A DNA stretch of 64,000 nucleotides from Epithemia pelagica (lineage: Eukaryota > Protista > Bacillariophyta), in NCBI GenBank assembly GCA_946965045.2, contig OX337241.1, positions 2,480,001 through 2,544,000 on the forward strand, given 5' to 3'. Below the pieces are notes generated by a model that saw only the letters and a program-made list of their open reading frames with translations, did not search any database and was not told the origin of the DNA. Made by a program: the position numbers and the translations under genes. Positions 14,557 through 46,419 of the stretch are shown here, piece by piece. How positions within the stretch are numbered: the stretch's first letter is position 1; every line of letters begins with the position of its first letter.

Positions 14557-14762
14557 TTCGATAACAAAACTCAAAAGATGGAGGGCTTGGGCTGGGGCGA
14601 GCCTGATCGAACTGATATTGGTAGAGAAGACACTCCGAAAAATCATGATTAGAGTGATTAGTACTACTAACTATTGTACGTACGTCAAGAGGGTCAAGGG
14701 CCACAAGCCACAAGCCACAAGCCACAAGTCACAAGTCACAAGGGTCAAGCTTTAAGCCGCCA
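14557..14762 (+). repeat. Dispersed repeat of about 200 bp, copy 1 (copy 2 at 26211-26398)
   Basis: ttcgataacaaaactcaaaagatggagggcttgggctggggcgagcc...ggtcaagctttaagccgcc is near-identical in both places. Confidence 0.9.
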
Positions 14763-15630
14763 CTAATAAGTTTGTACTCGTAATCTTATATCTTATGCCC
14801 TAACCCCTAACGTGGACGTTGGTGATCAATGGATCATGAATTCAACGTTTGAAGTTTGGTCGCGGATTTATGTCGAATTTGGGCGAATGACATCATGTAT
14901 TTTGCCTTCTCCTGCCCAACTGATGGTTCAGCGGTAGGCGGTCAAGCGTCAAGCGTCAAGCAGCTGACCTACTTGTACGAGGAGATTCCCAGCGCTTGAT
15001 TCGATAGCACATAGCACAGCTCTTGACCTTTACTCCTAGAGGTAGTCTGGTGTCTGGTTCCTTTCTCTCTAGCAGTACATCTAGGTAGGAGGTGGCACTA
15101 CCTAGGAGTATATAAGGCTTCTCGCCTTACATGTTACATGTAAGTTACATGGTCACGCAGAAGTTTCTCTCGCGAGTGACACCCTACTTGATTGATGATT
15201 GATCGTGCGGAGCTGGACCAAGGGTCATGGGTCATGGTCCCCAACCCCCAACCCCAGCCCCATTCCGCTCGTAACTTAAATATTAAATATTAAATGCTCA
15301 TTGAGTTGAATTTATCGTGCCAGGTGCCAGCTGCCGGCAATCAGCAAGGAAGCAAGAAGAAGGAGTAATTTTTGGCTCTATTGTTCATACTCGTAGCTCA
15401 TAGCTCATAGCGCTTGATAATATTTCTATTATACATTATTGTATGAGATATGAGAGAAGATAGAGAATGATATCAAAAATGTCCAAGGACCCCAAGGATC
15501 TCTATCATCTTTTGGAATATATGGTTGGGCCTTTTAAATCTCCGAAACAGAGACACCCTTTACCCTTTTGCTAAAACTAAACCGTCCACAAATTTGAGGT
15601 CTCATTTTTCTGAAGGACTATTGAAACAAC

Positions 15631-18600
15631 ATGATGAACTCAGATGACTCCGTTGCGTCCTCGGGCGTGGGTGGACTTAGCAATAAAGAGGAAGAGGATG
15701 ATGCATCTTTTCAACCGTCAGACGAAGCAAAAAACGAAATAGAAGAGATCAAAAAAATGATCAAAGACGAAACGCGCATCGTGCTCGCGTGGCGAATGGT
15801 CGTGATCGTGGCCATGCTACTTGTTTCAACTGGGGTGACTTGTGCCACATACTTCTTCCTTTCCAAACAAGAAGATGATGAGTACGAGAGCTCAGTAAGT
15901 GCTTTTGAGGAGAGGTGCGGTCATTCATGTGTGGTGTGTTCTAGTGCTTCTTACTATGTCCCTTGTTTCCTGTTACTGTAAAGTATGACCAAATCGTTTC
16001 GACAATGATGGATTCAATGCTGAGCCGAGTTGACTCTATCCGTTCCAGCTACAAAAACTTTGGAGATCAATTGACGTCAGTTGCCTTGACTGAAGGAAGT
16101 GAATGGCCCTTCTTCACCTACGAACATTTCAATCAGATTGCACAAAATGCGGAGGTACAAACAGGAGCCCTTGGAGTTTGGATGTTGCCTCTTATTTCTG
16201 AAGCTGAGACAGCCGAATGGTCGCATTACGTCATGACTCATAAGGACTGGTTCGGCGAAGAGCTTAGCAGTCAAATCCCGCCGGTGATCCACACAAGTAC
16301 TGCCAACGGTCCTATGACAATGGCAGACTATCCAGGACCATATGCCCCACTCTGGCAACTGCATCCACTACCGGCATACTCTCTGATGAATTTCGATTTG
16401 ATTCCAATTTCGGCCGAGCTCGAGGAGGGAATTCGAGTAGTTGAAAAGTTGGGAGACGGCGTGATCACCAATAGCTTTTCCACAGCGCTCATTGAACCTT
16501 TGTGGCCCTTTTTAAGCAAAATCAGATCCCATCCAAACGAAACTCTTTCCATCTACATGCAACCTGTCTTTGATGATTTCAACAAGTCTCGCCTAGCGTC
16601 CGTCGCACTTTTCTTCTTGCCATGGGGTTCCTTCTTTACGAATTCAATGCCGGACAGTGTCCGTGGGATTCATCTGGTCCTCAATAACTCGTGTGGGGAG
16701 GCCATCACCTGGGAACTTCAAGGCAACAAGGCTGTTTTCGCTGGCTTGGGAGATCTACATGATACTGACTATGATTCGCATAAAGTCCATTCTCCTCTTG
16801 GACTGTTTGAAGATGACGAGTTGGCTGCTGAGCTTGGAGTGTGCTTCTTTACATTGAATTTCTATCCATCATCGGTATTTGAAGATGATTACATTTCCAA
16901 TCGACCTGTGATTTCAACGGTGATTGTTGGCGCTGTTTTCATTTCAATCATGGCCGCATTCTTGGCCTATGATAGTTTTCAGCGGCGACGTAACACCAAG
17001 GTCATCATCATGTCTCTTTTCCCCAGTACCGTTCGTGATCGAATTTTAGAGCCTGTCCGGGCCAAGAAAGAATCTAAAAAGTCAAAGAATGATCCGTTTT
17101 CGTACAGCTCTTCAGACAAAAAACAGCTTCAAAACTTCCTCGACGGACATCATGAAAGGGAACAAGCAGCAACAATGGGGACGAAATCCATTGCTGATCT
17201 CTTTTTGGAGACCACTATCATGTTTGCAGATATTACAAACTTTACAGCGTGGTCGTCAGTTCGAGAGCCAACACAAGTCTTCACGTTGCTTGAGACTGTG
17301 TTCTCTGCGTTAGATCGCATTGCCAAGCGTCGTGGGGTCTACAAGGTCGAGACTGTGGGTGATTGCTACGTTGCAGTTGTCGGACTTCCGGTCCCTCGAA
17401 AGGACCATGCAGTGGTCATGGCGAAATTTGCCCGCGATGCCTTGGTCACGGTTAAGGATCTTGTGAAACAGCTAGAGCTGACTCTTGGACCAGACACTGG
17501 TGAATTGGGTATCCGAATCGGATTGCACAGTGGTCCTGGTAAGTTCACAAAACATTTTGCAGCAAATGAATCTGTAGATGATCTCTTACCTTTGTTTGCT
17601 TTGCAGTAACGGCCGGGGTCTTGCGCGGGGATCGTGCTCGCTTTCAGTTGTTTGGCGACACCATGAATACAACAGTAAGTGAATTCAATGCGTCCGAAGA
17701 CAAGTCCACGTCAAATTACAAGCTTGCTTTCTCACGACCAACGTCTTGCATAGGCTCGAATTGAGAGTACGGGGACACGCAACAGGATTCACATGTCCAA
17801 GGAAACCGCCGATTTGCTTAGCAGTGCTGGGAAGGGCCACTGGATCCAAGCCCGTCAAGATCTTGTTACGGCCAAAGGGAAAGGCACAATGAAAACGTAT
17901 TGGCTCAACCCCCTTGAAATCAAGGATAGTTACCCCGTCGCTCTCTCCACAAGTTCTTGCTCTCAATCGGAATATGACAATGTTAATACAACTCCTGATC
18001 AAGACGAGATTGCCAGCATTCACAAGCATAATCGTTTGATTGATTGGCAGGTTGACATGTTTGTTGGCCTTCTGAAACATGTTGTTGCGCGTAGAAATGC
18101 ATGCAAGAAGCTTACAACCACTGCGACTCTAGACAAGGACAAGCTTGACTGGAAGCCTGCCTCAGGCAAGATATGTCTAGATGAAGTCAAGGAGATTATT
18201 GAGCTCCCCGAGTTCAATGCACGTGCTGCACGCAGCAAGGAAGATCCGTCGAAAATTGACTTGGGACTCCTTGTTGTGGAGCAACTTCGGACCTATATCA
18301 GCACAATTGCGAGATCATATCGACAAAATCACTTTCACAACTTTGCCCATGCTTGTCATGTAACCATGTCAGTGAAGAAACTGTTATCGCGCATTGAGGC
18401 ACCAGAAGGCCTCGAAGACAGTATACTGGACAATGGAAGAAAGAGCATCCCAGAAGAGCCCAGAGATAGCCGCATGAAAGGAAAGATTGCCTCGTCACTT
18501 CATGACCATACGTATGGCATCACGTCGGACCCACTCACACAATTTGCCATGGTGTTCTCTGCTCTTATTCACGATGTTGACCACATGGGCGTCCCAAATG

Positions 18601-26210: not shown

Positions 26211-26398
26211 TTCGATAACAAAACTCAAAAGATGGAGGGCTTGGGCTGGGGCGAGCCTGATCGAACTGATATTGGTAGAGAAGACACTCCGAAAAATCAT
26301 GATTAGAGTGATTAGTACTACTAACTACGTACTACGTCAAGAGGGTCAAGGGCCACAAGTCATACTCGTAAGTCACAAGGGTCAAGCTTTAAGCCGCC
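26211..26398 (+). repeat. Dispersed repeat of about 200 bp, copy 2
   Basis: Matches 14557-14762 with small differences in the tactac and cacaag tracts. Confidence 0.9.
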
Positions 26399-28576: not shown

Positions 28577-28975
28577 GTAGAGAGAGTGGAGATCCGCACA
28601 CACTCTCTCACAGACACATGGCAAAAAACGCGACGGTGTTGGAAAAGAGGATAATCTTTTGTAGATACTGCGTTGTGTTTTGTTTCGTTCTCAATGGCAT
28701 TACTCGGAAGAACATTGCACTTTTGTGGATCGAAATCCTTCTCTTCGCAACCAACTAGGTACCTAGGTAGATGATCTGAATGGGACAATCATTCCAGCAG
28801 CTTTGCAATTTGTAGGCCTTTTTTGTGTTCGGATCGAGTCCTCTCTCTTTCTGATAGAAGATAGAAGACCCTTTGTGGGGAGTTGGAGTTGGGGGTTGCT
28901 TGCTAGGAGTAGATACTCTCCTATGCGAGTAGCTTGGACTTGCTATGTGAGATGTGAGGGAGAGATGTGGGATTG

Positions 28976-30726
28976 TGGGATGTGGGAGTGGGACACGACA
29001 AACGACAACGACGGATGGTCGCACTGACTGTCACGTTCGTTGTCGGCGCGGTCATTTTGGCATCGCCGACGCATGTGCTTAATTCGGAGAGGAGTCACGA
29101 TAACGTCAGCCGTTGCCAGCATCTATGTCATGTCGGTCGTTTCAAATGTGTCCCCCAAGAATGCCAACACAAAAGTCCCCCGAAACGATCGCCGGTCTAT
29201 CATCTCTCCTAAGGCAATAGTCGGATTCGTCAATAGCCCTTGAAGCTCAACGGTCCACTGTTTAGAACGTTGTTCACAATTTCAATTTTGTTCTTACAAC
29301 GCTCCGACCCTCTACTATGAATGATGCATACCTCCCTCATCAATGCTTGCTTTCGATTGGGTCCTATCTTGATATCAGGAAAGCACGACCGAGTCTTGTG
29401 TTGGAGGGAATGACAAGAACCACCCAACACCGAAATAGGAGTAGCGAGCAGAATATCTACTAGTAGAAAGCAGAATCCCATTGCGCGCATCTCTCAAGAT
29501 GAAAGAAACCACCACCATGACGGCACCAAGGCCTTGGCAAGGAAGCCTTTTCGTATGGTCCTTGCTCCTTCTCCTTCCATGGAGTCATGCCGTAGATCCA
29601 CAATCACATGGTCTCCCCCTTGTGGACGCAGTGCCGGATGAGGCAACAACTACCAACGACAAGGACATTAACAACAACAGACCACACCCACACACGAATG
29701 CCGTACAAGCCACGGTGCGACGAATACTGAGTCGACAAAGACACTTACCGGGAGATAGTCAGAAAAAGACCAAGGAGATGAAAAACTATTACTATTACTA
29801 CATGAACAACGTCAAGGGCAAGGGCAAGAGCAAGGGTGATGACGATGACGTAGACGATCATTACTTCGACTATCATAGCAAGGATTATGATGATTACTAT
29901 CATCACAAACTGCAGGACGACGATGACGATTACTATCACCTGTACGATGATGATCATTACTACTATGATGATGATCATCATTACAAGTCCAGCTCTGGCA
30001 AGGGCAAAAAGAAAAAGATTAACTCCCCGTCTCTATTTTCGTCCAAGGGAGGAGCTCCCGTGTACACTTGGAAGCCCACCATGCCTCCACTGGACATGAA
30101 TTTCACAATGGATGATGACATGACTGGCAATTTCACACACGATCCACCCCTTCCTGTCAGCAAGGGCAAGGGATTTTCCTCTGTGAGTTTTCAATTCACG
30201 GGGAAAATGGGCAAAAAGCAAAAAAAGCCATCGTCATCATCGTCAGGAGACAGTTCCAAGAAACACTTTCGAGATTACCATTTTGATTTGACCAAAGGCA
30301 AGGGAAAGGGAAAAGGCATGGGCATGGGAAAAGGTATGAGCATGGGCAAAGGAAAAGGCATGGGCAAAGGCAAGGGAGTGATTGTGACAGCCAAACCCTC
30401 CGTCTCTCCAATTTTTAATACTCCGGCTCCCAATGAAGACGCTCCTTCTCAGTCACCCACCAATTCGTCGGCACCCAGTTTTACACCGGCACCGTCCACG
30501 GAGCAAACTCCCGAACCTTCGCCACCGCCACCGACCAGCCCACCTACGGCCAACCCATCCAGAACAACCGTTCCGACCAGCATACCCACGACCACCCAGC
30601 CTACGGCCTTCCCAACCTTTCCTTCCGGGACACTCACTCCGTCGCCCACGACCAGCCCACCTACGGGCAACCCATCCGGAACAATTGGTCCTTCCGCGAC
30701 ACTCACTCCGACTCCATCCAATACAG
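28976..30726 (+). repeat. Segmental duplication copy A (copy B at 43317-46419, which carries a 1.3-kb insertion)
   Basis: Runs from tgggatgtgggagtgggacacgac to ...ccatccaatacag and is collinear and highly similar to copy B, with scattered SNPs and small indels. Confidence 0.95.
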
Positions 30727-30734
30727 CTAGCTAA
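29499..30734 (+). CDS. 3'-truncated paralog of the 45186-49295 secreted protein (signal peptide, Y/D/H-rich and KG-rich tracts, PT-rich linker only)
   Basis: Open frame of about 411 aa, nearly identical to the N-terminal third of the full gene. It ends at a TAA (30732-30734) supplied by the transposon terminal repeat. Confidence 0.75.
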   Translation: MKETTTMTAPRPWQGSLFVWSLLLLLPWSHAVDPQSHGLPLVDAVPDEATTTNDKDINNNRPHPHTNAVQATVRRILSRQRHLPGDSQKKTKEMKNYYYYYMNNVKGKGKSKGDDDDVDDHYFDYHSKDYDDYYHHKLQDDDDDYYHLYDDDHYYYDDDHHYKSSSGKGKKKKINSPSLFSSKGGAPVYTWKPTMPPLDMNFTMDDDMTGNFTHDPPLPVSKGKGFSSVSFQFTGKMGKKQKKPSSSSSGDSSKKHFRDYHFDLTKGKGKGKGMGMGKGMSMGKGKGMGKGKGVIVTAKPSVSPIFNTPAPNEDAPSQSPTNSSAPSFTPAPSTEQTPEPSPPPPTSPPTANPSRTTVPTSIPTTTQPTAFPTFPSGTLTPSPTTSPPTGNPSGTIGPSATLTPTPSNTAS

Positions 30735-32148
30735 CGGTGTTAACCGTCAACGCCGGCATCTCCAGAGAGCAACTCATCTGGTTCAGAAAGCGACATTTTT
30801 ACTATGACCCAAAGAGTTTGAAGCCCCTTTGTTAATTATAAAACTTCATGCCAACAAAACCCTCCGATTGCGGGGGTACCTCCCGTCTGCTGTCCATACG
30901 GTTATTCTCAAATTTTCCTAAAAAATGTTAAAATTATTTCTGTTAAATTTCTTTCGATTTAGCACATTATTATAACGTCCAAGCCAACTGTAATAACTGG
31001 CTTCGCCCTATTGTGTAGCCGCTTGCGCTCATGCATGACAGTGAGCGTGAGCCGTGAGACTTGACGAGACATGGACAAAGAAATCTACCAGCCCATTTTG
31101 TCTACTCAATAGTCTATTGTTTCAGAAGCGAGTACTCTTTACGCACAAGTGGATCTAGCTTCACGGAATCATCACACACACACAACACACACACACCATA
31201 CCATGAAATACACACACATGGTGCAATGTGCAATGCACCTCTAGAGGAGTATCAAAACAAGCTCCTGGCACTTTGTCTATGGGAAAGATAAAAGCATAGT
31301 CCACTACTAGTTTAGGCTTCCTGCTTCCTGGGCTTACATACCCCATGATGACGCTGTCAACCAGTGCACTGGTTGATTGTTCATTCCACTGGTTGATTGT
31401 CATGTTTCATGTTGTCATCCTTCCTTTGATGCATTCCACCTTCACTTGTGATCTAGGTGGATGGTTTTGACCATAAAGTTGTCACTTTGGTCGTTCGTCC
31501 GGCTGGGTGGTTTTCTTTTGGTTTTTGGTGTGCTCAGTGCTCATGGTCGTCTTTTGTGGTGTTGCTCGAAAAGTGAGACGATTCTTGGCCCATGTGCCAG
31601 CAATACAAGGCGTGACCGGCGCGTCGATTTCGAACGATCGAAGAGAGGCTGGCGATATCACCCGGCTGGCGCTTTGGGAAAAAATACGAGACAATTTTTT
31701 TCCATTCGGATGACGGACGAACAAAGGTACCCCCCCAATCGCACCCAAATTTAGGCGACCTTCGACTTCAAGCCGTTTCAACGGATGCATTATGGTAGTG
31801 AGAGCGAGACCAACGGTCGGGAGACATCCAATACATATCCAAGAATGACTCCCCGCCTTTGGTCTCGCTGTCCGACCTCCAAGTTGGTCCACATTTCACT
31901 GCCAACAACAATTGCCTCAATTTTCCAAAAAAATCATTGCTAAAAATTATGAGACCAACAAAAGATCGACACGCGACAGAACACTATTATTACATAAAGT
32001 ACAATTTTTTACCTATCGCACTTTAGTCTCCCTCCAACTGACCCAAGTTTCTCCCTCGTGAGCAACCTTGTTGATTGCTCTCCCAATTGACATGATACAG
32101 CTCTGCTGACGTGGAATTGTTGTTTAGCACTGCTTTGAAGTAACCAAC

Positions 32149-35100
32149 ATGCCGACGACACGGAGCAGGACGATGGCTGGAGCCAAACATGGATCATCAT
32201 GTGACGACGACTGCTGCTTACCCAATACTTTCGTTCCCCTCTCCATCCTACAACAATGTGCAGCTCCCCCCTCCACAAATGAATCTCTGAATTCGAACAG
32301 CGAGGAGACTGACAAGATATCACCAAACCAATCGGCGAAATCGAAAGCGAAGAAGACTAAGGCAGTTCCTCCCAGGACGAGACAGAGTAAACGAGTTCTG
32401 GAACAATCCGAAAGAACATCCACTCTCTCCGAACCGTCTTCGGACGAAACTTCTGACGACGATCAAGGCAAGGATATCAAGAAGCCCCCACCACCAAGAA
32501 CAAGAGCCAATCACAAGAACAAGAGACCTGTCCCTCCCAGAACGAGACACAATAAACGACGGAAAGCAACACCTGCACCACCCCCTTCCATGCTTCCATC
32601 CCCAAACAAAAGAACTAGGAGTGTGAGACGAGAGGAAAAAACCACCATTGAAGACTCTGTCCTTGAGCAACAGCGCATCGAAGCACTGAAGATAGACTTT
32701 CACGATTCCAAATACAAGCCGTGTTCTGTTTTCGGTCTCGACCGCAAAATTGGCGAATTCTCGGATTACTTCTTCTGTAGCCAATGTGACGCTGCAGACG
32801 ACGACGAACGACTTGGTGAGCTCAAGGTCAACCGACGAAGGAAAAAGGGCCCTACACATGCATCGCCAAGCATACCAACATACTAAGACCCACTGACCGT
32901 CGATATCCATAGCATGCTCCCAAAAGGTACCTGAAAAAGAAGAAACGTACCAGACGAAGAAAGAAGAAACAAGCTGCCGAAACAACCGAAGATGGTGGTG
33001 CTTCTTGTCGATTCCTCCCTATATTGATCGCTGACCACCAATATCTTTCCGACATTGAAGAAGAAGACCCCGCTGACGTCGAGGATGAAGAAGAAGGCGA
33101 TTCCCCTGCACCTCCGACTCAACCAAACACTCCAGAAGAGGACAACCAAGATGATGTAGAGGAACAAACACCTGTTCCTTCTACGACACCCTTCGTAGAG
33201 ACCGTTGAAGACGATGACGATGACGACGAGGAAGCCAGTCATGATGTTAATTGTAATTCGAATAGTGATAACTCTGTAGAACGTCCCCCTCCCTCAAACA
33301 GTACTCCACCTGAGACCAATGATTCAGCTGATCAATACAAGAAAGAGATTGAAGACCTGAAGAAGCAACTTTGACAGTCCAAGAACAGAATCAAATCGTT
33401 GGAAAGAACTCTCAAGAACACTGAAGAGCAACTCCGGTATGCCAAGAAGAAAAACGAAAAGATTGTCTGCGAGAAATGTAAGACCGACCAACTACCAGCT
33501 TCTTGTTTCTTCCCCGAAGACTCCAAAGAACTCGTTAACTACATAAAACAGTTCATACGAGACAAGACAAAGACCATTTGGAGCACTGAAAGCCGCGCCA
33601 GTAGACTCTTTTTCACCCAACTCGCAGAAATGCTGCTTGACGAGAATATACACAACGGCCAACTGAAAGAATGTGCCTACTCCGTCTTTTGCAACGTACG
33701 AGACAATGTCTTCACCCCTCACAAGATTCTTAAGTTGATGGACAAAAGAGGGGGAGTTTTAAACTACAAAGGTATTGAATTACTTTGAATGGTAGAAACC
33801 GAGGGTGTGCCCAACCAAAGAACTCTTTTGCCGTCATCGAACTGCCTTCAAAAGTACGCTGCGATGGTCGAAGGTTTTGGTCGGGGAGTTTGCCCATTCA
33901 TCATGAAACGCAACGTGAAAGACGGAACTGAGGGGTTCTCATTCCGTGCAGCGGATGTAATTATATGTCTTTTGAAGTCTGGCAAAGTGTTGGACGGCGA
34001 GGCAATGACGAGGGCAATTCGTCTTGTACAAAGCCTTGACGGGGCACTTTTTACCAAGAACCTCTCGCATACTCTTATAGGCATTAAGTTCAACGATCCT
34101 ACAAACCCTTACGCCCAATCAAGAGATTCTGTATTTCCTGTTGGGTGTATCGCTCTGCCCGAGAGTACGTCTATGGTCCACGGAGTATTCTCTCGGGTTT
34201 TCGCGGAAATTCGTGAGGCAACGGAGAAGGTGATTCCGAACGCATTCGAGAACGTCGAACTGGTGCTCGTCACGAACTGTGACATGAGCTGCGATTGGAA
34301 ACTTATGGGACGTGGAGGTGCGGCGAAGCAGCACAAGTTTCCTTGTTCTAAATGCACAGTCCAAAGTGGCAAGTTGCACCAGAGAACTGGTAAACCGGCG
34401 AATTGCGACTTCTGTATCCAATTGGGAAGGGGTGAAGACCCAACATGGATCTGCCGACATACCAAAATGTGCACTGAGAAGTACGTCAAGGAATTGAAGA
34501 AGGAAGTAAAGGATTTTCGCGAGAGTACGATGCCGCAGATATCCAAGGACATCAAAGCCTTACGGAAAGAGTCCCAGTTGTCTATCAATCACCACCCAAG
34601 ATTGGATCCAACAGACGAACACAAAACAAACATCACCTGCATCCACTTTGATTTGTCGGTGGCTTCGTCAGAACAGAGAAGTGAATACTCCAAACGAATA
34701 ACAAATGACCTACGCATTCGACGACTACCGCTATTTGGATCGCTCGAGGTACGGCAACAACGCCTCAAGTCGCAGCAACTAGCAGAATGGGAATATATAA
34801 AGGCATATGAATGCCTTCAGGACATGAAGTCTTCGAAAAAGATGGATGCTTTGGTTATGATGTTGGATTCGATTCCTTGCTTGTTGCACTTGGAAAACCG
34901 AATGGGTATTAAGTTTCTCGGGATGTGTCTCAAATCAGGTTTGACAATTGCCAAGTCTGCAGAGAATGCCACCGATGTAACAATACAAGCCTTCTTGGAC
35001 AAAGTGGCTGGTGTGATGAACACGGAGGTCATCGGTTCTACGACTCAACCGACTCAGTGGAAGGTTCCGTTCGATAAAACGGACAAAAAGATCGGCGATA

Positions 35101-35926
35101 TTACAATGGACAACGTCCGAATTCGCAAAGTTCTCAAGAACTTCGATGCGCTCGTGGATTGTTGTCTAGTAGACCCACTGAAGAAGCAGCAGTTTAAGAA
35201 AGCTGTCAGTAGCTTCCGGTCCGGCATGAAGAAGGTCAATGTCAGACATGGTCTCTCTGATCCAGAAATCATCTCTTTCCAGCGTGACATGGACGACTTC
35301 TTTGCTGAATGGTGTACCCTCTACGGAGAAGATGGTATTACCAACTACGCACACATGCTTGGGAGTGGACATATAATGGAGTATCTTCTCCACTGGAGAA
35401 ATCTCTGGGTCCACTTCCAACAAGGATGGGAAGGTAAGTTCCCATGTTGTTGTTGCGAAGAATGAACCATGATCTTTGACTCACAGACGGCGGAATTGCT
35501 GTGCAGCCTTCAATAGTTTGTTCAAAACATACTATTTCTCCAGAACACAACGTGGTGGGGCAGGAAATGGTGGTAAGGGATCGAAGAGTAGGATGCATTC
35601 TTTAGCAAGATGGCTTCAACACCGGATGGGGCACTACCGAGGAGCAAATCAAGGCCAAGCATCTCAACTTTTCCGAACAAGAACTAGATAAATTCGATGG
35701 ATGGGTAAGAAAGAATGGTGGAACCATTGAGTGTGGTTTACCAATCAATGACGAGTCTCCATTGTGCTTGGAGGATCTCCAGGGACCTGTTGAGGAGAAC
35801 TGGGAATATGGGGTGACCGTGTTGGATACCACCAATGACAACGACGACGACGACGACGAAAGCCCTGGAGTTGATGATCTCTTAAGGGTATTACAAACAG
35901 AAGAGGAGTACTTAGATACAAACTAA
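32149..35926 (+). pseudogene. RAG1/Transib-like DDE transposase, disrupted
   Basis: VQSLDG (D 34038), TNCD (D 34281), FPCSKC, IPCLLHLENR, ITNYAHMLGSGH and QQGWE|AFNSLFK (E 35430, intron 35434-35506) occur in the order of RAG1 D600, D708, C727/C730, LH, H937/H942 and E962. Lesions: frameshift at about 32880, TAG at about 32909, TGA at 33372, TGA at 33786 and a frameshift at about 35625. The acidic tail ends at TAA 35924-35926. Confidence 0.75.
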
Positions 35927-36279
35927 TTGTGTTTTTATTGTCACGAGATATACTACTAAGGCTTATACGAATAGAACTTTGTTGTCGAATGGAACGATCA
36001 CCACTTGAAGAGTGGAACTGTGCTGTTGAATGGAACAATCAGTTGAAGCTACCAACTAGCATTTCTACTTTGTCGATGTCATCCCATTTCTCTGTTTTCT
36101 GATGTTCAGGTGCAAGATCATGATCATAGTCTATGCCGCCAATCACCCGAGCAAGCACAAAGTGACCAGTGGCACCATCTTGGATGGTTACAATCTCAAA
36201 AACGTTCTGTTCGTCCCAGTCTGAGAATTGTTGACCAATGGTAAGGCGGGGGACAGATTGGGTGTCTTTGGTACACGCT

Positions 36280-37040
36280 TGTTATGATTCTCACCTTTAA
36301 CTAGGTGGTGGTGGAATCTACAACACATCGACTGATGCTAGTATTTTATGGCATCCGATGACATTTGTGTAAAAGTGAGAAAAGAATGACGGCATGCTCG
36401 CGGACCTTTAATTTTGGCCAAGGCATGCTCGCAATGCACGCGCTATCGGCGACCGCTCGGATATTGACTATGGCCCATCACGTGCGCGCCCAATATTCTC
36501 AAGCGCGCGCAATCAAGATCCGAGTGAGCACCTCCACGACTTACCTCAACGACCTAAGAAATCAAAGCACGAATCACGATCACGCGAGACCATATTTCCA
36601 TTCCCACAATTCCAAGAATGCAATCAACAACGCGCCAAGAAAACTACCTATATCACAACAAAGCAAGAGCTGTTGGCATTGGTATATGATATAAAACCGC
36701 ATATACTTTCAATACAACAATGCAGGTCTACTCCAACCATTTGAGGACCTATCACACCAGATCCATGGCCGTATACAAGAGCCAGGACTTCGGCTTCATC
36801 AAACACCTTAGTTAGTAATCATCTCACAATCAATAATATCACCATTTTAACACTCATCTTAAGACTAACCTCTTATCAGTGGACCGACTGCCCCCACCCA
36901 CGGCCGACTTCGACTTGCAACTCTTCTCTGACCCGTGGAGGATTGTTGTATCGGTTGGTGATTCGATTGTCGGCTCAGCGAGCCTTTTACCTATCCCAAC
37001 TACCTATTACCCTTCTGAATTCTCAATGAGAGTTCTGCTA
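36280..37040 (+). repeat. 5' LTR
   Basis: Starts TGTTA, ends TTCTGCTA; matches 40940-41700. Confidence 0.97.
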
Positions 37041-37060
37041 GATTAACAGTCTCATCGCTC
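37041..37060 (+). other. Putative primer-binding site complementary to the anticodon-arm (5' half) region of tRNA-Asn
   Basis: GATTAACAGTCTCATCGCTC directly follows the 5' LTR. Its reverse complement GAGCGATGAGACTGTTAATC resembles the D-stem and GTT anticodon arm of tRNA-Asn. Confidence 0.55.
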
Positions 37061-37544
37061 ATTGCCCTGCAGTCGCATTGGAGATCATACTTACCCATCT
37101 ACATTGAGTACAGATTGAGCTACACCAACAAACAAGAGTTAGAGGACAAAGCTACCCAACCCAACAACAGGGCCAGCCTGGCTAAGGCTAGGGTCATCAA
37201 CCCTCTCCTATTCCAGGACCTCAAGCTGGACCAGGACTTCGTGCAACTACCTTCCCAATACTCACCTGACCAGTACTTTGCTGAGGACTACGAGCAAGAC
37301 GAGGAAGCTACCATTATTCCTGACTCCCTGGTTCAACTCGATCACCGCAACGAGTCCGGAAGTGACCAAGGATAAGTATCTTTAAGTAGTTTCCACAACA
37401 AACCAGAGACAAAACCGAGTTCCGCACATCCGGGTTCCCAGCACAACACACATCCGGGTACTGACATACGTGGCACACACGTGGTACATCCGGGTTCAGA
37501 TCACACCACACATTAAATAAACAACGAACCAACCATATACTACC

Positions 37545-40500
37545 ATGGATCCAACATACCCCAAGACACCTTCTCTTCCTTCTGACGACTCAGTACCGCC
37601 TGACATATCAGATACACAAGTGTTCAATCATATCACCCAGCATCTATTTGAATGTGATGAAGAACGAGCTCAAGCCCTTCATCAATGGATAAAACATAGT
37701 GGTTTCGAACACATTCTGAATGTCATCGACTATCTTGCAGTCAATCCAGAAAAGAATATCAAGGACCTTGGACAATACAAGTATGGGAACAAGACGATGG
37801 ATCTGAAGACATTTACAAGGCATCAACTGAAGATCCTAGCACATTGGTCACGAGAACAAACCTCAACCCTGCAGCAGTCTGATTTACCTCGCTCTACCTG
37901 GTTGAACCTCACCAAGGCCAATTATGATCATTGGAGAATCAATGCAGACTTCACCAAGCTCCGTCTGAACCAAGGTTGCATTTCGTCATTTCGTTTAGCA
38001 AAAAGAGAGGTGCTACGTCTTAACAACTACATCTCCAATCTTCGTCTCGATGATTCATGGCACGGCACAACCTATCAGTTTCTTCTCCACTTTCAACACC
38101 AATTCCATCTTCTCGACAATCTGGGATCAATGTTTGATCACATTCCTGGCCACTCCACTAGGATGACCTTCCTGATGAAAGCCGTTGAAAAGGTACCTGA
38201 TTTACGACAAGTCAACATCTTGTCTGGTGCAAAGACACTTTGTTATCAATCATATTTCCGTCTTCTCCTTGATGCCGCATATGATCATGACCAAGCAACT
38301 CGAGCACCAAAGTCTAACCGACTTAAGCATACCAAGCAATGCGACTTTCAATATGATCAAGATTTTCATATCAAAGATCTATCACCCAAAGAAAAACACC
38401 GCATGATTAAGAGAACTAACGTGAAGACCAAGGAATCATCTTCGCTTCGTCCAAAGATCAGTCTTCCAAGAGATCTGTGGAGTAAACTCAACGACAATAG
38501 TCGTCAAGTAATCATTGCGTACAACAAGTCTACCCAGAATCCGTCATCAACAACTGCATGCATGGAACAGACGCATACTCTTGACATTGATCCGGAACCT
38601 GATCCCGACCCTGGTCGTGCATGGATTGACGACATGATTCAAGATGATTCCCAAGACCATCAAGATAATTTCTTTGATCTGATTACCCGGTTGGTTCCAC
38701 AAGTTGTGACCAATATTGATGTCAATCATCCAACATCTGATCTTGCTAATTTGGTGTCCAATATCAAGGCAACATCCATCCCTAATGATTGTCTCGAGAA
38801 CAACAACTGTAAACAGAAAGTTGAGATATCTCGAAATCTGCTCTCTCGCATGTCTTCTTTCTCCGGTGACAATCAATTGACGGGCTATAATCATTGGTAT
38901 CTTGATCCCATGCAAGATACGGCACCTTCTTCAAGGACTGTTGAAAATGATGGCAACAATCCGCATGATGCTTTTGGGAAGTATACCAATCGTGTTGTCT
39001 GTAACCTCAACCTTCTCTTGGATTTACCTTACGATCATGGACCTGATACGCCTTCCTTCTTCACACCCCTGCTTGGAGAATACTGTTCCAAACCATACCT
39101 CCAAGATCAGAACATGGCTGAGAACCGTTATCAGACCGTTAAGAGGACAACATACGTCGTGACCGTTTTGGGCCATATCCCTCTTGAGATCCTCAATGGT
39201 CGCCCACCCGGCATTACCCACCCTCTTTTCTTCCTTATCTGGGACAAGGCCCCCTACTTTACCGAATCATATGCCCTCTCCCACCGTCCCTACCGTCCCT
39301 ACCCTCCCTCTTTTGTCACGACACTTGGCTACTGGCTTGTTTTTGCCCCTCCTATTGGTGATACTTTGTCTCTGGACACTCAACCCCTTTGTTACTCTGC
39401 CATTCTTCATGATGCACCCACGCCACCCAGCAACCTTTGTGTGGATACCTCTTCAGGGGAGGAATCGCTTCCAAGTGAACCCAACGGCAAGCAAGCTGAC
39501 ATTGTTCTCATTTCTAGCAAAGGTGAAGATCCATCCACGCAAATTCCAACGATCAAACATGATGACACTATTGGACAACCTTTCCTTGTTTATGATCCAG
39601 AGGAAAATGGGGAGCAACGACAACCGTATAATGGGGAGCAACCACAACCGTGTCTTATAAGATGCGTCATTGATTTAGAACAAGATGCTCTCAAGCAAGA
39701 AGACTGTATCAAGTACACTTTCTGCAAATCCATTTCCGACATTGACAAGATAATTTCATACCGTCAACATATGGAATACATCAAACAGGACAACCAAGCA
39801 CAGGAAACTGAAGATGACGTTTTTCAGTTCAGGGACGTTGTTGCAGATCAAGAACCGTCAAGTATTAGCAACAATCCTGACTACAAAAGAAGTCACTGTA
39901 ATATACTTGTTGATTGGGAGACTGGGGAGATGATCTATGAGCCTCCGTCACTCATGGTAAATGATGCCTATGCCAAGAAACATGACCTATTAAATGAACT
40001 TGGATGGAAACATCTCAAGCGTTTTGTCAAGACCAGTAAATGCCTTGTTCAAGCTGCCAAACAGCAGTCAAGAATCAAGCAAGTCTGTCGTTCCATCAAG
40101 TACAAGTTTGGTTATCAAATTTCAATGACAAATGAAGAATTAGTTGTTTTGTTAGACAAGCAACATGGTAAAAGAAAGTGGCACGACACTACTGAAGTTG
40201 AGCTCTTTCAGGCTTCACAGATCCAATCCCTCACAAAAGTCAAGGATTGCGTTCAAGCTCAGTTCAAGAGAAGGGAAATGATAAATGCATCACCAAAAGA
40301 GTATCACAAGAACAAGATTCGAATCCATCTTGTAAAACATGATGATAGTCGCCCAGCACTTCTCATCACAGACGAGGCTTTTACCAAAGAACCGGTTGAG
40401 GCAATCTTTCTGTGTACTACTTCCATTCACAACTTCCATACAACCACCTGTCTTGGGATTCTCAATGATATGGATATATGGGGAGCAAAAGTTGGAAATG

Positions 40501-40964
40501 CACACGACCTGGAAGCTTTATCTGGAGAGAAGATCTTGATAGTTGCAAGACAAGAACTCAAGGAATCAGGTCACATCTTGATTACGCACAAGGCCTCAAA
40601 GGGATTAAAATCTTCAGGAGCATGTCGGCGTGACTGTTTCTTTGACATCCCACTTGATATGGATTTGTCACCAACTAAAGCAGATCCCAATATTTGGATG
40701 AAGAAGGCACCTGGGGAGCATAGCTCAAAGGGCACCGACAAGACCTACCAACTGAAGAATGATGAACTGATTACTTATTGCCTGAGATATCTCTATGAGA
40801 GCGTCCGGGATACATTGTCAGTAAGCATTGGAAATTCTGGAAAGTATGGACCACGTTCAAGATCATATTCTTCTGGGGAGGAAACGTTCAGAGGCATGAC
40901 AAGGAAAATAACAATCCTCACTCGACGAATTGTGGGGAGTGTTAGGATTCTCACCTTTAACTAG
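37545..40964 (+). CDS. Degenerate gag-pol polyprotein (open 1139-aa frame, catalytic motifs lost)
   Basis: Gag-like N-terminus and eroded Copia RT motifs KIRIHLVKHD, WGAKVGNAHDLEA, KASKGLKSSGA and KADPNIWMK. No recognisable protease D(S/T)G, integrase HHCC/DDE, RT YVDD or RNase H. Confidence 0.8.
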   Translation: MDPTYPKTPSLPSDDSVPPDISDTQVFNHITQHLFECDEERAQALHQWIKHSGFEHILNVIDYLAVNPEKNIKDLGQYKYGNKTMDLKTFTRHQLKILAHWSREQTSTLQQSDLPRSTWLNLTKANYDHWRINADFTKLRLNQGCISSFRLAKREVLRLNNYISNLRLDDSWHGTTYQFLLHFQHQFHLLDNLGSMFDHIPGHSTRMTFLMKAVEKVPDLRQVNILSGAKTLCYQSYFRLLLDAAYDHDQATRAPKSNRLKHTKQCDFQYDQDFHIKDLSPKEKHRMIKRTNVKTKESSSLRPKISLPRDLWSKLNDNSRQVIIAYNKSTQNPSSTTACMEQTHTLDIDPEPDPDPGRAWIDDMIQDDSQDHQDNFFDLITRLVPQVVTNIDVNHPTSDLANLVSNIKATSIPNDCLENNNCKQKVEISRNLLSRMSSFSGDNQLTGYNHWYLDPMQDTAPSSRTVENDGNNPHDAFGKYTNRVVCNLNLLLDLPYDHGPDTPSFFTPLLGEYCSKPYLQDQNMAENRYQTVKRTTYVVTVLGHIPLEILNGRPPGITHPLFFLIWDKAPYFTESYALSHRPYRPYPPSFVTTLGYWLVFAPPIGDTLSLDTQPLCYSAILHDAPTPPSNLCVDTSSGEESLPSEPNGKQADIVLISSKGEDPSTQIPTIKHDDTIGQPFLVYDPEENGEQRQPYNGEQPQPCLIRCVIDLEQDALKQEDCIKYTFCKSISDIDKIISYRQHMEYIKQDNQAQETEDDVFQFRDVVADQEPSSISNNPDYKRSHCNILVDWETGEMIYEPPSLMVNDAYAKKHDLLNELGWKHLKRFVKTSKCLVQAAKQQSRIKQVCRSIKYKFGYQISMTNEELVVLLDKQHGKRKWHDTTEVELFQASQIQSLTKVKDCVQAQFKRREMINASPKEYHKNKIRIHLVKHDDSRPALLITDEAFTKEPVEAIFLCTTSIHNFHTTTCLGILNDMDIWGAKVGNAHDLEALSGEKILIVARQELKESGHILITHKASKGLKSSGACRRDCFFDIPLDMDLSPTKADPNIWMKKAPGEHSSKGTDKTYQLKNDELITYCLRYLYESVRDTLSVSIGNSGKYGPRSRSYSSGEETFRGMTRKITILTRRIVGSVRILTFN

Positions 40965-41700
40965 GTGGTGGTGGAATCTACAACACATCGACTGATGCTA
41001 GTATTTTATGGCATCCGATGACATTTGTGTAAAAGTGAGAAAAGAATGACGGCATGCTCGCGGACCTTTAATTTTGGCCAAGGCATGCTCGCAATGCACG
41101 CGCTATCGGCGACCGCTCGGATATTGACTATGGCCCATCACGTGCGCGCCCAATATTCTCAAGCGCGCGCAATCAAGATCCGAGTGAGCACCTCCACGAC
41201 TTACCTCAACGACCTAAGAAATCAAAGCACGAATCACGATCACGCGAGACCATATTTCCATTCCCACAATTCCAAGAATGCAATCAACAACGCGCCAAGA
41301 AAACTACCTATATCACAACAAAGCAAGAGCTGTTGGCATTGGTATATGATATAAAACCGCATATACTTTCAATACAACAATGCAGGTCTACTCCAACCAT
41401 TTGAGGACCTATCACACCAGATCCATGGCCGTATACAAGAGCCAGGACTTCGGCTTCATCAAACACCTTAGTTAGTAATCATCTCACAATCAATAATATC
41501 ACCATTTTAACACTCATCTTAAGACTAACCTCTTATCAGTGGACCGACTGCCCCCACCCACGGCCGACTTCGACTTGCAACTCTTCTCTGACCCGTGGAG
41601 GATTGTTGTATCGGTTGGTGATTCGATTGTCGGCTCAGCGAGCCTTTTACCTATCCCAACTACCTATTACCCTTCTGAATTCTCAATGAGAGTTCTGCTA
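40940..41700 (+). repeat. 3' LTR
   Basis: Matches 36280-37040; preceded by the PPT and followed by TSD ACGCT. Confidence 0.97.
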
Positions 41701-43316
41701 ACGCTTTCTTCTGAACCAACGATTGCTGGTTACCATTCGACTCGTTGGAAGGTTCATCAGACGACTTGGAATTATCAGGGGGTGGATGGTTTGGTGACTC
41801 GTCGGAGAGATCACCCTTGAGGACCTTGGCAAGAGCTTCGTTGGGAGGGGGGGGAACGCAATTTACCATCATTGCCAACAGAAAATTGAAACTGCTCGTA
41901 AGAAACAACGACTCGGAAAGAGAAATCAGACCAGCAAAAATCAACCCGTTGAGCACGGCAGTGTTTTTTGATAGGGCCGTCTTCGTCGTCGTCTGCTTGC
42001 CCATTGACCACGGTGATACAGTGATCGTGCTTAATGGGGAGACCTTCTTCACCATCCTTCAATGTGGGCTTACGCTCGGTCAATCCATAGGTAGAACCAA
42101 ATCCGAGTAAGCCACGGAGAAATTTTAATTCTTCTGGAGTCTTGAATCGGATAAGGGAGGAAGGGTACTCCATCCGAACTTTTTTACGAGTGAAGCTTGG
42201 ATCCACGTCTAAATAGGAAGCAGTGGCCATCGAGTTGTGAGTTTTGATGCCGTGGCGTCGACAAAGGTGGACTACATATGTCCAAGTCTCTGTAGGGATC
42301 AATCCAATGGTTTCCCCGGCTACTTCTCTTTCCTCGGCTTGACCAGAACACTTCTTAAGCAATTTGAAAATGGCCTTCCAGATCAGAAATAAACCTACGA
42401 AGGCAGACTGGTGGAAGCATCTTGGGGGGCAAATGGCGCCGTCGGATATGCGTCGTAGAAGGTGTTCGTTGGGGAAGCATAAGTGTAAATCGTGGTCGTC
42501 CAGTTGGACGAGCTTCTCGCGGCTTGATGGGTCTTCGAGATTCTGCAAGGTAACACGGAAACGAGCAATATATACATTGCTAAGGCCGTGTGTCCAGGCA
42601 TTCTTCGGTTTTTTGAACTCGGAGTAATTAAAAACGAATGCTGGGTGAAGAATGATCGAAGCACCATCAACTTTCTTCTGTACAAGCAACTTGGACTGGT
42701 AGAGTTCGATGTTTCTGCATCCTGTCGAAATCAGGATGCGTGGGAAATTGTGTTCCGGTATTTTAGGGAGAGGGGGCGTTGTAGTTGGATTCTTGGGGAA
42801 GAGAGGAGGGAATACAACGAACTTTAGACCTGTTTGTCCAATCCGAGAATGGATCCTTGCAATGGACGTGGTGTTCTTGTCGATTATGATCCGAACGAAA
42901 CTTCCCACACGAAGGTTGTCGTCAATCGCTTTCACGTAGAGGGGTGGTGAATTGATCTGCGGAGGGATGGATGGCATGGTGCTGTTGTCGTCTTGGGCAG
43001 TGAGAGGATGTTGGTCGAAGGATCAAGACAATGAAGGTCGTCTTTGAATGCCTAGACGCATTCTTGTCATTGACGACGTGCTGTATTGGCCTCGGTGGGT
43101 GAGTTCCGAGTTGGTTCATGGCTGAGAAAATGAGGCGAATCTGAATGATGATACGACAGAAAATCTACTTCCTAATTCATAAAAAGTTTGTCGTAGAAAA
43201 GTCTTGATTTTTATGATTATGGTCGCCGGCATGGTTTGTGAGAGTGGCAAGCGCGAGAAATTGGTGATTTGGCACGTGTACCCAGAAAGACGTTAACACC
43301 GTTAGCTGGTATTGTG

Positions 43317-46300
43317 TGGGATGTGGGAGTGGGACACGACAAACGACAACGACGGATGGTCGCACTGACTGTCACGTTCGTTGTCGGCGCGGTCATTTTG
43401 GCATCGCCGACGCATGTGCTTCATTCGGAGAGGAGTCCACGATAACGTCAGCCGTTGCCAGCATTTATGTCATGTCGGTCGTTTCAAATGTGTCCCCCAA
43501 GAATGCCAACACGTCTCGTGTCGTTTGTTAGAACAAGTCCCCCGAAACGATCGCCGGTCTACTACAAGCTGGCTCGAGACGCTACCTGCATGGCATAAAT
43601 AGTGTAAGAAAAACATACAATAAAGTAGGACAACACTTTAGCCAACAGTACCCTAGCGTTCTGGTTTGCCTTCCGGTTTTTCGGTTACGAGCTTGTCCTC
43701 ACATTTTGTCACGCATTTCATTCAAAAAGCAAATATCGATAACGATTAGTGACCGCTTCCCATGACGATGGCCGTCGTAGGCCGTTTGAGGCGGCACCAC
43801 CCCCCAGACTTTTAGTATAGGTGTAATATAACAATACCAGAACGGTGGTGCCGGCTCAAACGACCTGCATCTCGAGCTATACCAGTAGTTACTAGCTAGT
43901 AGTGCTTCACGATCATAAGATCGTGAAAACATGATTGGTTGCGGGGGAACCCAACAGACCATGAAACACAACGGCATTCCATGCCTCGAAGGTACGCTCC
44001 AACAAGGAATCTGCCCACAGAAAGCCAACCATTTTCACCAGTGGAACATGTCGTGGATGCCACCGGTATACGAGCGAATACCACCCACCTGGTTCTTGTT
44101 GTCGTTGTTTATTGTGTAGATGGAATTTGACACAATCGTAGACACGGGGAGAAGAAAACCAGTACACACTGGTGGTCATGCCACGCATAAACAGTGTTGC
44201 CAGTATCCCACACCCCACAAATTGGGAGAGGTGCTGTAGTGGTGGCAGGCCATTTGCAGCGGCAGCAGTAGCTGAGAGTTGAGTTGTTGTCATTGCCATC
44301 CAAAGACTATGAAATAACCCAGGAGCGACGCAAAGCCAATGTCATGAGTCGTCCAAAGCCAATGCCATGAGCCGTCCATTCCATCCGACACCACTTGCTC
44401 CACGGAACGTTGGTTGGTTGATGGATCGTATCTTCTGGTTCTTGTTCTTGTAGAGATGCAGCGTCCCAAAAAACTTCTTCTGCTTCTTCTTCTTCTTGTT
44501 GCTGCTGTTAGATTGTATGGTGCGAGGGAGAGGATACCATGTGACTGGGTGGTTTCGGGTGTTAGTTCTCCGTGCCACAAATGGTATCGTATGCATGCCT
44601 CGAGAAACGAGTTACTGCTCGTATTATTCGTACGGGTAGTGGTGATGCGATGAAAGACCTAGGTCCGATACAACTCTTGTCGTGTCGGAAGAACAAGAGG
44701 CCCTCCATAGATCCATTAAGGCATCATTTTCGACGTTGTATCGGGTTTTGCCATGGCCATGGTCGTCGTCTCCACAAAAGGAAGGGGGCCTATGTCGTGA
44801 CTATAAATTTTTGTGTAGGAATGCCACGTTAGCGTGTCAGTACAGTATTTTTACTCTAATAATCTCATGCAGGTTGCGTCTCGAGCCAGCTTGTATCATC
44901 TCTCCTTAGGCAATAGTCGGATTCGTCAATAGCCCTTGAAGCTCAACGGTCCACTGTTTAGAACGTTGTTCACAATTTTAATTTTGTTCTTGCAACGCTC
45001 CGACCCTCTACTATGAATGATGCATACCTCCCTCATCAATGCTTGCTTTCGATTGGGTCCTATCTTAAAGCACGACCGAGTCTTGTGTTGGAGGGAATGA
45101 CAAGAACCACCCAACACCGAAATAGGAGTAGCGAGCAGAATATCTACTAGTAGAAAGCAGAATCCCATTGCGCGCATCTCTCAAGATGAAAGAAACCACC
45201 ACCATGACGGCACCAAGGCCTTGGCAAGGAGGCCTTTTCGTATGGTCCTTGCTCCTTCTCCTTCCATGGAGTCATGCCGTAGATCCACAATCACATGGTC
45301 TCCCCCTTGTGGACGCAGTGCCGGATGAGGCAACAACTACCAACGACAAGGACATTAACAACAACAGACCACACCCACACACGAATGCCGTACAAGCCAC
45401 GGTGCGACGAATACTGAGTCGACAAAGACACTTACCGGGAGATAGTCAGAAAAAGACCAAGGAGATGAAAAACTATTACTATTACTACATGAACAACGGC
45501 AAGGGCAAGGGCAAGAGCAAGGGTGATGACGATGACGTAGACGATCATTACTTCGACTATCATAGCAAGGATTATGATGATTACTATCATCACAAACTGC
45601 AGGACGACGATGACGATTACTATCACCTGTACGATGATGATCATTACTACTATGATGATGATCATCATTACAAGTCCAGCTCTGGCAAGGGCAAAAAGAA
45701 AAAGATTAACTCCCCGTCTCTATTTTCATCCAAGGGAGGAGCTCCCGTGTACACTTGGAAGCCCACCATGCCTCCACTGGACATGAATTTCACAATGGAT
45801 GATGACATGACTGGCAATTTCACACACGATCCACCCCTTCCTGTCAGCAAGGGCAAGGGATTTTCCTCTGTGAGTTTTCAATTCACGGGGAAAATGGGCA
45901 AGAAGCAAAAAAAGCCATCGTCATCATCGTCAGGAGACAGTTCCAAGAAACACTTTCGAGATTACCATTTTGATTTGACCAAAGGCAAGGGAAAAGAAAA
46001 AGGCATGGGAATGGGAAAAGGAATGGGCATGGGCAAAGGAAAAGGCATGGGAAAAGGCAAAGGCAAGGGAGTGATTGTGACAGCCAAACCCTCCGTCTCT
46101 CCATTTTTTAATACTCCGGCTCCCAATGAAGACGCTCCTTCTCAGTCACCCACCAATTCGTCGGCACCTAGTTTCACACCGGCACCGTCCACGGAGGAAA
46201 CGCCCGAACCTTCGCCACCCCCACCGACCAGCCCACCTACGGCCAACCCCACCAGAACAACCGTTCCGACCAGCATACCCACGACCACCCAGCCTACGGC

Positions 46301-46419
46301 CTTTCCAACCTTTCCTTCCGCGACACTCACTCCGTCGCCCACGACCAGCCCACCTACGGGCAACCCATCCGGAACAATTGGTCCTTCCGCGACACTCACT
46401 CCGACTCCATCCAATACAG
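43317..46419 (+). repeat. Segmental duplication copy B
   Basis: Collinear with 28976-30726 apart from the 43563-44895 insertion and small indels. Confidence 0.95.
43563..44895. mobile_element. Non-autonomous TIR element (about 1.33 kb, TA target, Tc1/mariner-like ends)
   Basis: 30-bp TIRs including the flanking TA, 1 mismatch: tacaagctggctcgagacgctacctgcatg (43563-43592) and catgcaggttgcgtctcgagccagcttgta (44866-44895). The empty site ccggtcTAtcatc is present in copy A (about 29192-29205). Confidence 0.92.

Follow-up and report, generated by a model that had tools for sequence, protein, structure and literature searches.

A decayed two-gene transposon with a RAG1-fold transposase and a tail-to-tail partner gene in the diatom Epithemia pelagica

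Transposases of the EnSpm/CACTA, Mirage, Chapaev, Transib and Plavaka groups, as well as those of ESTA and Lanisha, share C(2)C and H(3-4)H motifs with RAG1 and together with it form the CMCT clade, whose elements have CA..TG termini and 2-5-bp target-site duplications, and in which HHpred leads ESTA to RAG1 (Kojima 2025, PMC12730594). All Transib elements studied show two hallmarks, a target duplication of 5 bp and a terminus whose positions 1-3 read CAC (PMC1131882), and DUF1280 has been equated with Chapaev transposases and grouped with RAG1 (Majorek et al., PMC3985635). Transib-like genes have been reported from bacteria, fungi and plants, together with an active RAG1L+RAG2L transposon of the pelagophyte Aureococcus (AanRAGL), which came to light through sequence homology to RAG1/RAG2; its duplications are of 5 bp, its termini are CAC and both genes run in the same direction (Tao et al. 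2022, PMC9435367). Here we describe a decayed two-gene transposon within a 64,000-nt window of Epithemia pelagica contig OX337241.1 (GCA_946965045.2), the window being the whole stretch of DNA analysed and all coordinates positions in it. The locus is composite and was resolved by open reading frame (ORF) listing, three-frame translation and self-BLAST (Table 1). The element is very probably a dead, rearranged copy of a ~6.2-kb autonomous two-gene cut-and-paste family abundant in diatoms, an undescribed CMCT lineage on the RAG1/Transib/Chapaev side of the clade. We found no published description of this diatom family in the literature searched.

A sequence-only reading of the same DNA had proposed a RAG1/Transib-like transposon with two convergent genes between inverted repeats, and had noted that its stramenopile host is far from the animal lineages in which such elements are best known. 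The two-gene transposon bounded by inverted repeats in a diatom was confirmed, the same gene pair lying between conserved termini at related loci. The host is not itself new, given the Aureococcus transposon (PMC9435367), and the assignment to RAG1/Transib was not borne out, as set out below.

Transposase gene and predicted core fold

The broken plus-strand ORFs at 32149-35926 had been read as fragments of a single protein of ~1,200 aa, and relatives do align across all of the frames. Frame 1 is open from 32149 to ~32835, frame 3 over ~32847-35433, frame 1 again from 35507 to ~35628 and frame 2 over ~35642-35926, and intact relatives follow this 1>3>1>2 order in tblastn from 32596 to 35746. 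The gene is dead, since its frame shifts twice (near 32835-32847 and near 35628-35642) and is interrupted by in-frame TGA stops at 33372 and 33786; the encoded DDE transposase is ~1,150-1,200 aa long. Every motif listed by the sequence-only reading was present at its place, as was the GT-AG intron, the 73-nt removal of which joins QQGWE to AFNSLFK directly after the catalytic E codon. The spliced form occurs in the relative P0009, and most unspliced database ORFs of the family end at this same point, between GWE and GK. One locus, L004, encodes the whole 1208-aa transposase in one uninterrupted ORF (8001-11627) without the otherwise conserved intron, and cluster members of the same length were seen on two more contigs.

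Landmark columns of the catalytic core, from D1 (34038) to E (35432), are invariant or nearly so in 44-62 diverse relatives, with D, D, E, C-x2-C and H-x5-H invariant across a diverse set of 44. The cysteines follow D2 at +21/+24, the histidines precede E by 26/20 residues and the D2-to-E distance is 383-395 aa. This Cys/His spacing almost equals that of RAG1, which is +19/+22 (D708 to C727/C730) and 25/20 (H937/H942 to E962). The D2-E insert is longer than in RAG1 (383-395 versus 254 aa) and holds an extra Cys/His cluster.

For the intact relative P0016, AlphaFold (AF2) gave a confident model with an input of 62 sequences; its predicted local distance difference test score (pLDDT) is 81.8, with the core above 90. 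In this model D1 falls on strand 1, D2 directly follows strand 4 and a later helix carries E, as in the RNase H fold. Foldseek searches against the PDB gave 49 hits at E<=1e-3, all 49 of them RAG1, amphioxus BbRAGL or HzTransib (best 1.5e-11), and the first hit beyond these was unrelated, at E 0.024. The RAG1/Transib fold, with its D-D-E triad and Cys/His ligands at RAG1-like spacing, is supported; only RAG1, BbRAGL and HzTransib were significant PDB matches. With VIA-align, HzTransib scored Z 19.7 (415/480 residues aligned), RAG1 Z 19.7 over residues 460-1007 and BbRAGL Z 18.2, compared with 10.4 for the P element, 8.1 for ISCth4 and 6.3 for Hermes; some RAG1 structure alignments reached the nonamer-binding region, from residue 391. 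Among Swiss-Prot models, eight RAG1 orthologues matched at ~1e-11, and after a million-fold gap came hAT-derived proteins, none better than 3e-5. The ~640-aa core of the transposase has the layout of RAG1/Transib: a dimerisation/DNA-binding region, a pre-RNase H region, an RNase H domain into which a Cys/His zinc module is inserted, and a C-terminal domain. It would presumably cut at the CA termini and reinsert the excised element.

At the sequence level, Pfam returned nothing relevant for the window pieces, nine full-length relatives or 44 core sequences, with no hit to RAG1_RNase_H, RAG1_ZnC2, RAG1_ZnH2 or RAG1_pre-RNase_H at E up to 10 in any of these. Searches of PDB sequences with phmmer and hmmsearch produced coiled-coil noise only.

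Table 1. Features of the composite locus (window positions; LTR, long terminal repeat)
Feature	Position	Strand	Basis or remark
Host gene copy A: 1.76-kb duplicate comprising upstream region and initial ~415 codons of a secreted-protein gene	28968-30728	+	self-BLAST
Left junction and left inverted repeat	30719-30744	+	sequence reading, repeat search; junction-spanning X3 contig 30559-30885
Element, decayed transposon copy	30729-43314	.	12.6 kb in present form
Nested high-copy repeat, ~0.9 kb	30855-31748	.	own 17-nt inverted ends 30865-30881 / 31725-31741
Transposase pseudogene	32149-35926	+	ORF listing, tblastn with intact relatives
Motif SLDGA	34032-34046	+	translation
D1	34038-34040	+	invariant or nearly invariant column
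Motif TNCDMS	34272-34289	+	translation
D2	34281-34283	+	invariant or nearly invariant column
Motif FPCSKC	34338-34355	+	translation
C-x2-C	34344-34355	+	invariant or nearly invariant column
Extra Cys/His cluster	34404-34460	+	invariant or nearly invariant column
Motif IPCLLHLENR	34872-34901	+	translation
Motif ITNYAHMLGSGH	35337-35372	+	translation
H-x5-H	35352-35372	+	invariant or nearly invariant column
Motif QQGWE	35418-35432	+	translation
Catalytic E	35430-35432	+	invariant or nearly invariant column
Conserved 73-nt GT..AG intron	35434-35506	+	splice reading, relatives
ORF2, C-terminal part, Tudor/SH3-like small domain	36039-36279	-	stop codon 36039-36041
Nested LTR-bounded element	36280-41700	+	LTRs 36280-37040 and 40940-41700
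ORF2, N-terminal and middle part	41706-42977	-	start 42977; 388 aa to stop at 41811
Right terminal inverted repeat, intact	43292-43314	-	read inward CAATACCAGCTAACGGTGTTAAC; recurs at related elements' ends
Host gene copy B: upstream region and full gene	43315-49295	+	self-BLAST, ORF listing

Family copies, termini and partner gene

Intact elements of the family are ~6.2 kb long, have inverted termini of ~17-19 nt that start CAATAC(C/G)AGC, and encode a transposase of ~1,150-1,200 aa, usually with one intron just after the catalytic Glu, and an ORF2 protein of ~450-570 aa. Five complete copies (L001, L002, L008, L009 and L010) measure 6,094-6,246 bp, and 20-22 of the first 25 nt match between their two ends. 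CAATAC[CG]AGC does not vary among nine ends taken from six elements, one of which is a metagenome contig from another sample, and all ends examined have the form CAATAC...GTATTG (5'-CA..TG-3'). Evidence for mobility comes from copies at different loci in which homology ends at the termini: L001 and L008, which lie on different contigs and have unrelated flanks, share 98% identity across 6,249 bp. L001 stands for a family whose transposase core ORF is ~70% identical to that of the window copy, and the homology between the two begins at exactly 30729 and stops at 43315. A profile search returned 2,633 clusters (50% identity) at E<=1e-3, and the named members are the diatoms Epithemia and Seminavis (Seminavis robusta). 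Inverted repeats were not convincingly found for L003 (contig end), L004 (LTR insertion beside ORF2) and L005.

Two further observations concern arrangement within the family. At L007 (5933 and 12248), a left end identical to the one of the L009 family begins, on the same strand, a short way past the ORF2 of another element; the two family members are nested or abutting there. A distant relative on a metagenome contig (L006, ERZ27251109, 49-4703) keeps the terminal ACAATACGAGC and has same-strand ORFs in place of the convergent ORF2, one of them with a faint His-Me finger/Stc1 signal.

In the window, the inverted repeats that the sequence-only reading placed around both genes are real: a perfect 16-nt repeat pairs 30729-30744 with 43292-43307, and for the 23-nt right end no match arose by chance in shuffled sequence (0/100 shuffles). 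The outer part of the left repeat did not stand, since 30719-30726 (CAATACAG) is host sequence that recurs in the intact copy of the host gene (46410-46419), and the CACAATA terminus read earlier took in two flanking host bases. Positions 30727-30728 are filler, and the left end lacks the intact consensus terminal CAATACC; given the host origin of CAATACAG, we regard it as a truncated, microhomology-type junction. The right end adjoins the host upstream region, and contigs of runs X1, X2 and X3 cross its repeat to 43344. One X2 contig skips 107 nt at 43121-43229, upstream of ORF2 in the right subterminal region, which may be an allelic deletion.

The second gene, ORF2, ends 112 nt from the transposase stop (36039 against 35926), close to the ~110 bp estimated from the letters. 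A frameshift near 41811-41890 leads into a frame that continues across the LTR element by which the gene is split (36280-41700). Tail-to-tail linkage of ORF2 to the transposase, another claim of the sequence-only reading, was consistent across the window and nine other loci: the two genes are convergent and adjacent in the window, in L001, L003, L004, L007, L008, L009 and L010 and in Seminavis L005, with ORF2 fragmented in L002, and the stop-to-stop gap is 57-112 nt where measured. The window ORF2 is 67% identical to the intact 492-aa ORF2 of L001 and 35% identical to that of L004. Since synonymous sites are saturated between families whilst non-synonymous divergence (dN) is 0.27-0.39, and the ratio of non-synonymous to synonymous divergence (dN/dS) is 0.17 between young copies, ORF2 is a protein under purifying selection. 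Its non-synonymous divergence proceeds about as fast as that of the transposase (0.27 and 0.24, respectively, between L001 and the window).

Searches with Pfam, PDB profiles, atlas features, Foldseek against the PDB, VIA-wide and the atlas fold search gave no RAG2, Kelch or PHD match to ORF2, in keeping with the earlier remark that the partner is not obviously RAG2. The predicted structure is mixed alpha/beta, with helices within the N-terminal 390 aa, and has an overall pLDDT of 49. Its last ~70 aa are better modelled (pLDDT 70-85), and Tudor, KOW and chromo-barrel folds match over this whole domain at Z 5-5.7; a Tudor/SH3-like barrel is a common small fold, and the match is a lead only. ORF2 would presumably serve the transposase as an accessory subunit, one that may read chromatin or nucleic acid through this C-terminal barrel, and it would then be analogous to RAG2 in role and gene position rather than homologous to it.

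Classification and alternative explanations

The zinc-site motifs had been taken as a signature of RAG1 and Transib. The motifs are present, as described above, but are common to the whole CMCT clade; the family has the invariant C-x2-C and a His pair spaced H-x5-H, and all of its ends are of the 5'-CA..TG-3' type. Neither Transib hallmark was found: position 3 of the terminus is A rather than C in nine ends, which is not the Transib/RAG CAC heptamer, and none of the five complete copies has a 5-bp target duplication, or any of at least 3 bp. It is on account of both absences that we file the family as an undescribed CMCT lineage. RAG1 and Transib supply the only solved structures of the clade, so that PDB hits to them are expected for any CMCT member. 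In the ESM Atlas fold search, the template modelling (TM) score by query was 0.42 for CACTA (Transposase_21, ~500 residues aligned) versus 0.45 for RAG1, and the best TM by hit (0.70, root-mean-square deviation 3.9) belonged to a cluster bearing DUF1280. Language-model features separated the candidates more clearly, with 0.92 for RAG1 clusters (183-187 features shared) and 0.93-0.94 for DUF1280 clusters (184-191 shared), against 0.86 for CACTA (129 shared) and 0.83 for Plavaka, and this separation places the family on the RAG1/Transib/Chapaev side of CMCT. The DUF1280 clusters emerged as the nearest named ones with RAG1 families masked, and DUF1280 itself is annotated in only 12-16% of their members.

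Compared with described systems, the diatom family resembles Transib (HzTransib, PDB 6PQX/6PQN) in its whole-core fold, its DDE residues on an RNase H domain, its inverted repeats and the Cys2/His2 module inserted between D2 and E. It differs in lacking similarity at the level of hidden Markov models (HMMs), in its CAATAC termini and in carrying two genes on 6.2 kb where Transib has one gene on 3-4 kb; its transposase has roughly double the length, and both the extended D2-E insert and the extra Cys/His cluster set it apart. With RAG1-RAG2 and ProtoRAG (BbRAGL, PDB 6B40) it has in common the fold of the catalytic subunit and a second gene placed tail to tail inside the element, whereas its termini and target duplication differ and its partner shows no Kelch propeller or PHD finger. 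AanRAGL shares the stramenopile host, and is unlike the diatom element in its route of discovery, termini, duplications and gene orientation. Chapaev, of the same clade and with the same C(2)C and His motifs, gave the highest language-model similarity and the best TM by hit, but no short duplication was detected in the diatom family, which has two genes and no DUF1280 HMM hit. CACTA/EnSpm and the wider CMCT share the overall fold in predicted models, C(2)C, CA..TG termini and more than one gene per element; relative to CACTA, however, feature similarity is clearly lower, H-x5-H takes the place of H(3-4)H as the His motif, CACTA termini and a 3-bp duplication are absent, and the partner is a convergent gene instead of arising from the same transcript.

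Among other explanations, the one to which we would give some room, although we consider it doubtful, is that the family is no lineage of its own but a divergent member of the Chapaev superfamily (CMC). It would account for the nearest named clusters carrying DUF1280, for the best TM by hit and for the CA..TG termini, and the published link of DUF1280 to Chapaev and RAG1 agrees with it (PMC3985635). It sits poorly with the failure of hmmscan to match DUF1280 in any family member, with the small share of DUF1280 in those clusters and with the lack of a 3-4-bp duplication. Neither a two-gene structure nor a size of 6.2 kb is known as a Chapaev feature. That the element is a genuine RAG-like or Transib member, of ProtoRAG type with a RAG2-like partner that has diverged past recognition or been replaced, is unlikely. 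Among solved structures it is indeed RAG1, RAGL and Transib that match best, HzTransib being covered almost completely, and RAG1 clusters come first in the feature search; the genes lie tail to tail as in ProtoRAG, the Cys/His spacing is RAG1-like, and a stramenopile RAGL exists (PMC9435367). Yet no RAG1_* Pfam model was hit in 44 members even at E 10, Chapaev-type clusters score equally or higher in features, and the A at terminus position 3, the 0/5 copies with a 5-bp duplication, the long D2-to-E interval with its extra Cys/His cluster and the mixed alpha/beta prediction for an ORF2 devoid of Kelch and PHD signals all point elsewhere.

We give next to no credence to the proposal that these are host genes, or one domesticated gene and its neighbour, between coincidental inverted repeats; although no transposition event was directly observed and no target duplication is clear, it would have to explain ten loci, at different genomic positions, that all have this gene pair within conserved termini, copies of 98% identity that sit on different contigs and lose their homology precisely at the termini, and thousands of clusters with many decayed copies, the window copy itself being a pseudogene.

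An undescribed CMCT lineage remains the reading that we prefer, and several points weigh against it. The placement in the clade is suggested by structure and language-model scores, and at the sequence level there is no link to any named superfamily (nothing recurrent from Pfam in 44 members, coiled-coil noise from PDB profiles). No consistent target-site duplication of at least 2 bp was found in the five complete copies with several terminus offsets tried, in a test whose cut points were not fixed by empty sites and for which the window copy, with its rearranged left junction, is uninformative; only L008 shows a 2-nt match (TT/TT), and four of the five show a 1-nt match. Such a pattern is odd for any DDE transposon and lies outside the 2-5-bp range of CMCT. 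No RNA run holding the sequence was found, and neither excision nor new insertion was seen. For the Seminavis ORF2, homology is weakly indicated by two collinear hhalign matches, each at E 0.048, which include an FGSTxG..PTL.D motif, and the poor ORF2 model leaves formal room for a very diverged propeller.

History of the window copy and significance of the family

The present copy is inactive owing to the two stops and two frameshifts in its transposase and to the frameshift and recent LTR-element insertion in ORF2. Two younger insertions have brought it to 12.6 kb; without them it would measure ~6.3 kb, the size of its relatives. The ~0.9-kb repeat is 93.6% identical to L002 7064-7924, has a word depth in read contigs of 50-100x single copy, and is missing from the related L001, which aligns over 30729-30859 and then 31745-32030. 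The L002 copy of this repeat sits ~90 bp from the left end of the element there. The LTR element has 761-bp LTRs that are 99.87% identical, a 5-bp target duplication (ACGCT, 36275-36279 / 41701-41705) and an internal ORF of 1139 aa (37545-40964) in which no Pfam domain was found, neither reverse transcriptase nor integrase. A Copia-like label was dropped, the ORF having no Pfam hit and matching only its own copy in L004. That second copy (protein 92.7% identical) lies directly beside the ORF2 of the intact L004 element (L004 ~13500-18200), and the word depth of the LTR element is 100-700x single copy. A 5,728-nt contig of run X1, at single-copy depth, consists of 31749-36274 joined directly to 41701-42902, which demonstrates an allele without the LTR element; the insertion seems heterozygous or polymorphic, and it may be very recent.

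A direct host duplication of 1.76 kb (28968-30728 / 43315-46419) lies on both sides of the element, copy A adjoining its left end, with identities of 98.5% between 28974-29170 and 43315-43512 and 97.6% between 29198-30726 and 44894-46419. The full ORF of copy B encodes 1375 aa (45168-49295, plus strand). Upstream of this copy, and missing from copy A, is a 1.33-kb element at 43562-44893 with 48-nt inverted ends (85%), flanked by TA and multi-copy by depth. The host gene contains about eight tandem 39-nt (13-aa) repeats encoding DLSPSNAPSEANT (46411-46733), which start at the exact breakpoint of copy A. Contigs from independent runs cross both element-host junctions, and this argues against the flanking duplication being an assembly artefact. 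Elsewhere in the window we noted a 151-nt repeat pair of 98% identity (14557-14707 / 26211-26359) and a ~1-kb pair of 80% identity (56919-57913 / 60131-61131).

The left end is joined to codon ~415 of the second host-gene copy through a shared CAATAC with 2-4 filler bases, and because of this microhomology and filler the junction looks like a product of repair or recombination, not of normal insertion. The simplest history would be an exchange through microhomology between two chromatids or homologues, one occupied and the other empty, in which the left terminus was lost at the junction; an aberrant two-target transposition is the alternative. By either course the element would come to lie between two copies of the same 1.76 kb of host DNA. 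The local value of this fossil copy lies in its nested insertions and in this microhomology-mediated duplication.

The evolution of RAG1 has been argued from few lineages, namely animal RAGL, Transib, a single pelagophyte RAGL and the Transib-like genes of bacteria and fungi. The present family, which runs to thousands of clusters and is undetected by Pfam models or RAG1 homology searches, keeps the complete RAG1-core architecture together with a second gene. As a tentative suggestion, diatoms may harbour an ancient, independent two-subunit RAG1-fold transposase in which a partner with a Tudor-like reader domain would do for the transposase what RAG2 (Kelch plus PHD) does for RAG1, and which would leave a duplication of at most 1 bp. 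If true, this would be a second, convergent invention of a catalytic subunit and a chromatin-reading cofactor encoded tail to tail, with a strand-transfer geometry unlike that of any described DDE superfamily. The intact copies L004, L008 and L010 are a possible transposition system in diatoms, where genetic tools are few. The family also offers a deep outgroup for rooting the RAG1/Transib/Chapaev radiation, and a natural case on which to test whether organisation in two subunits recurs as a solution for the RAG1 fold.

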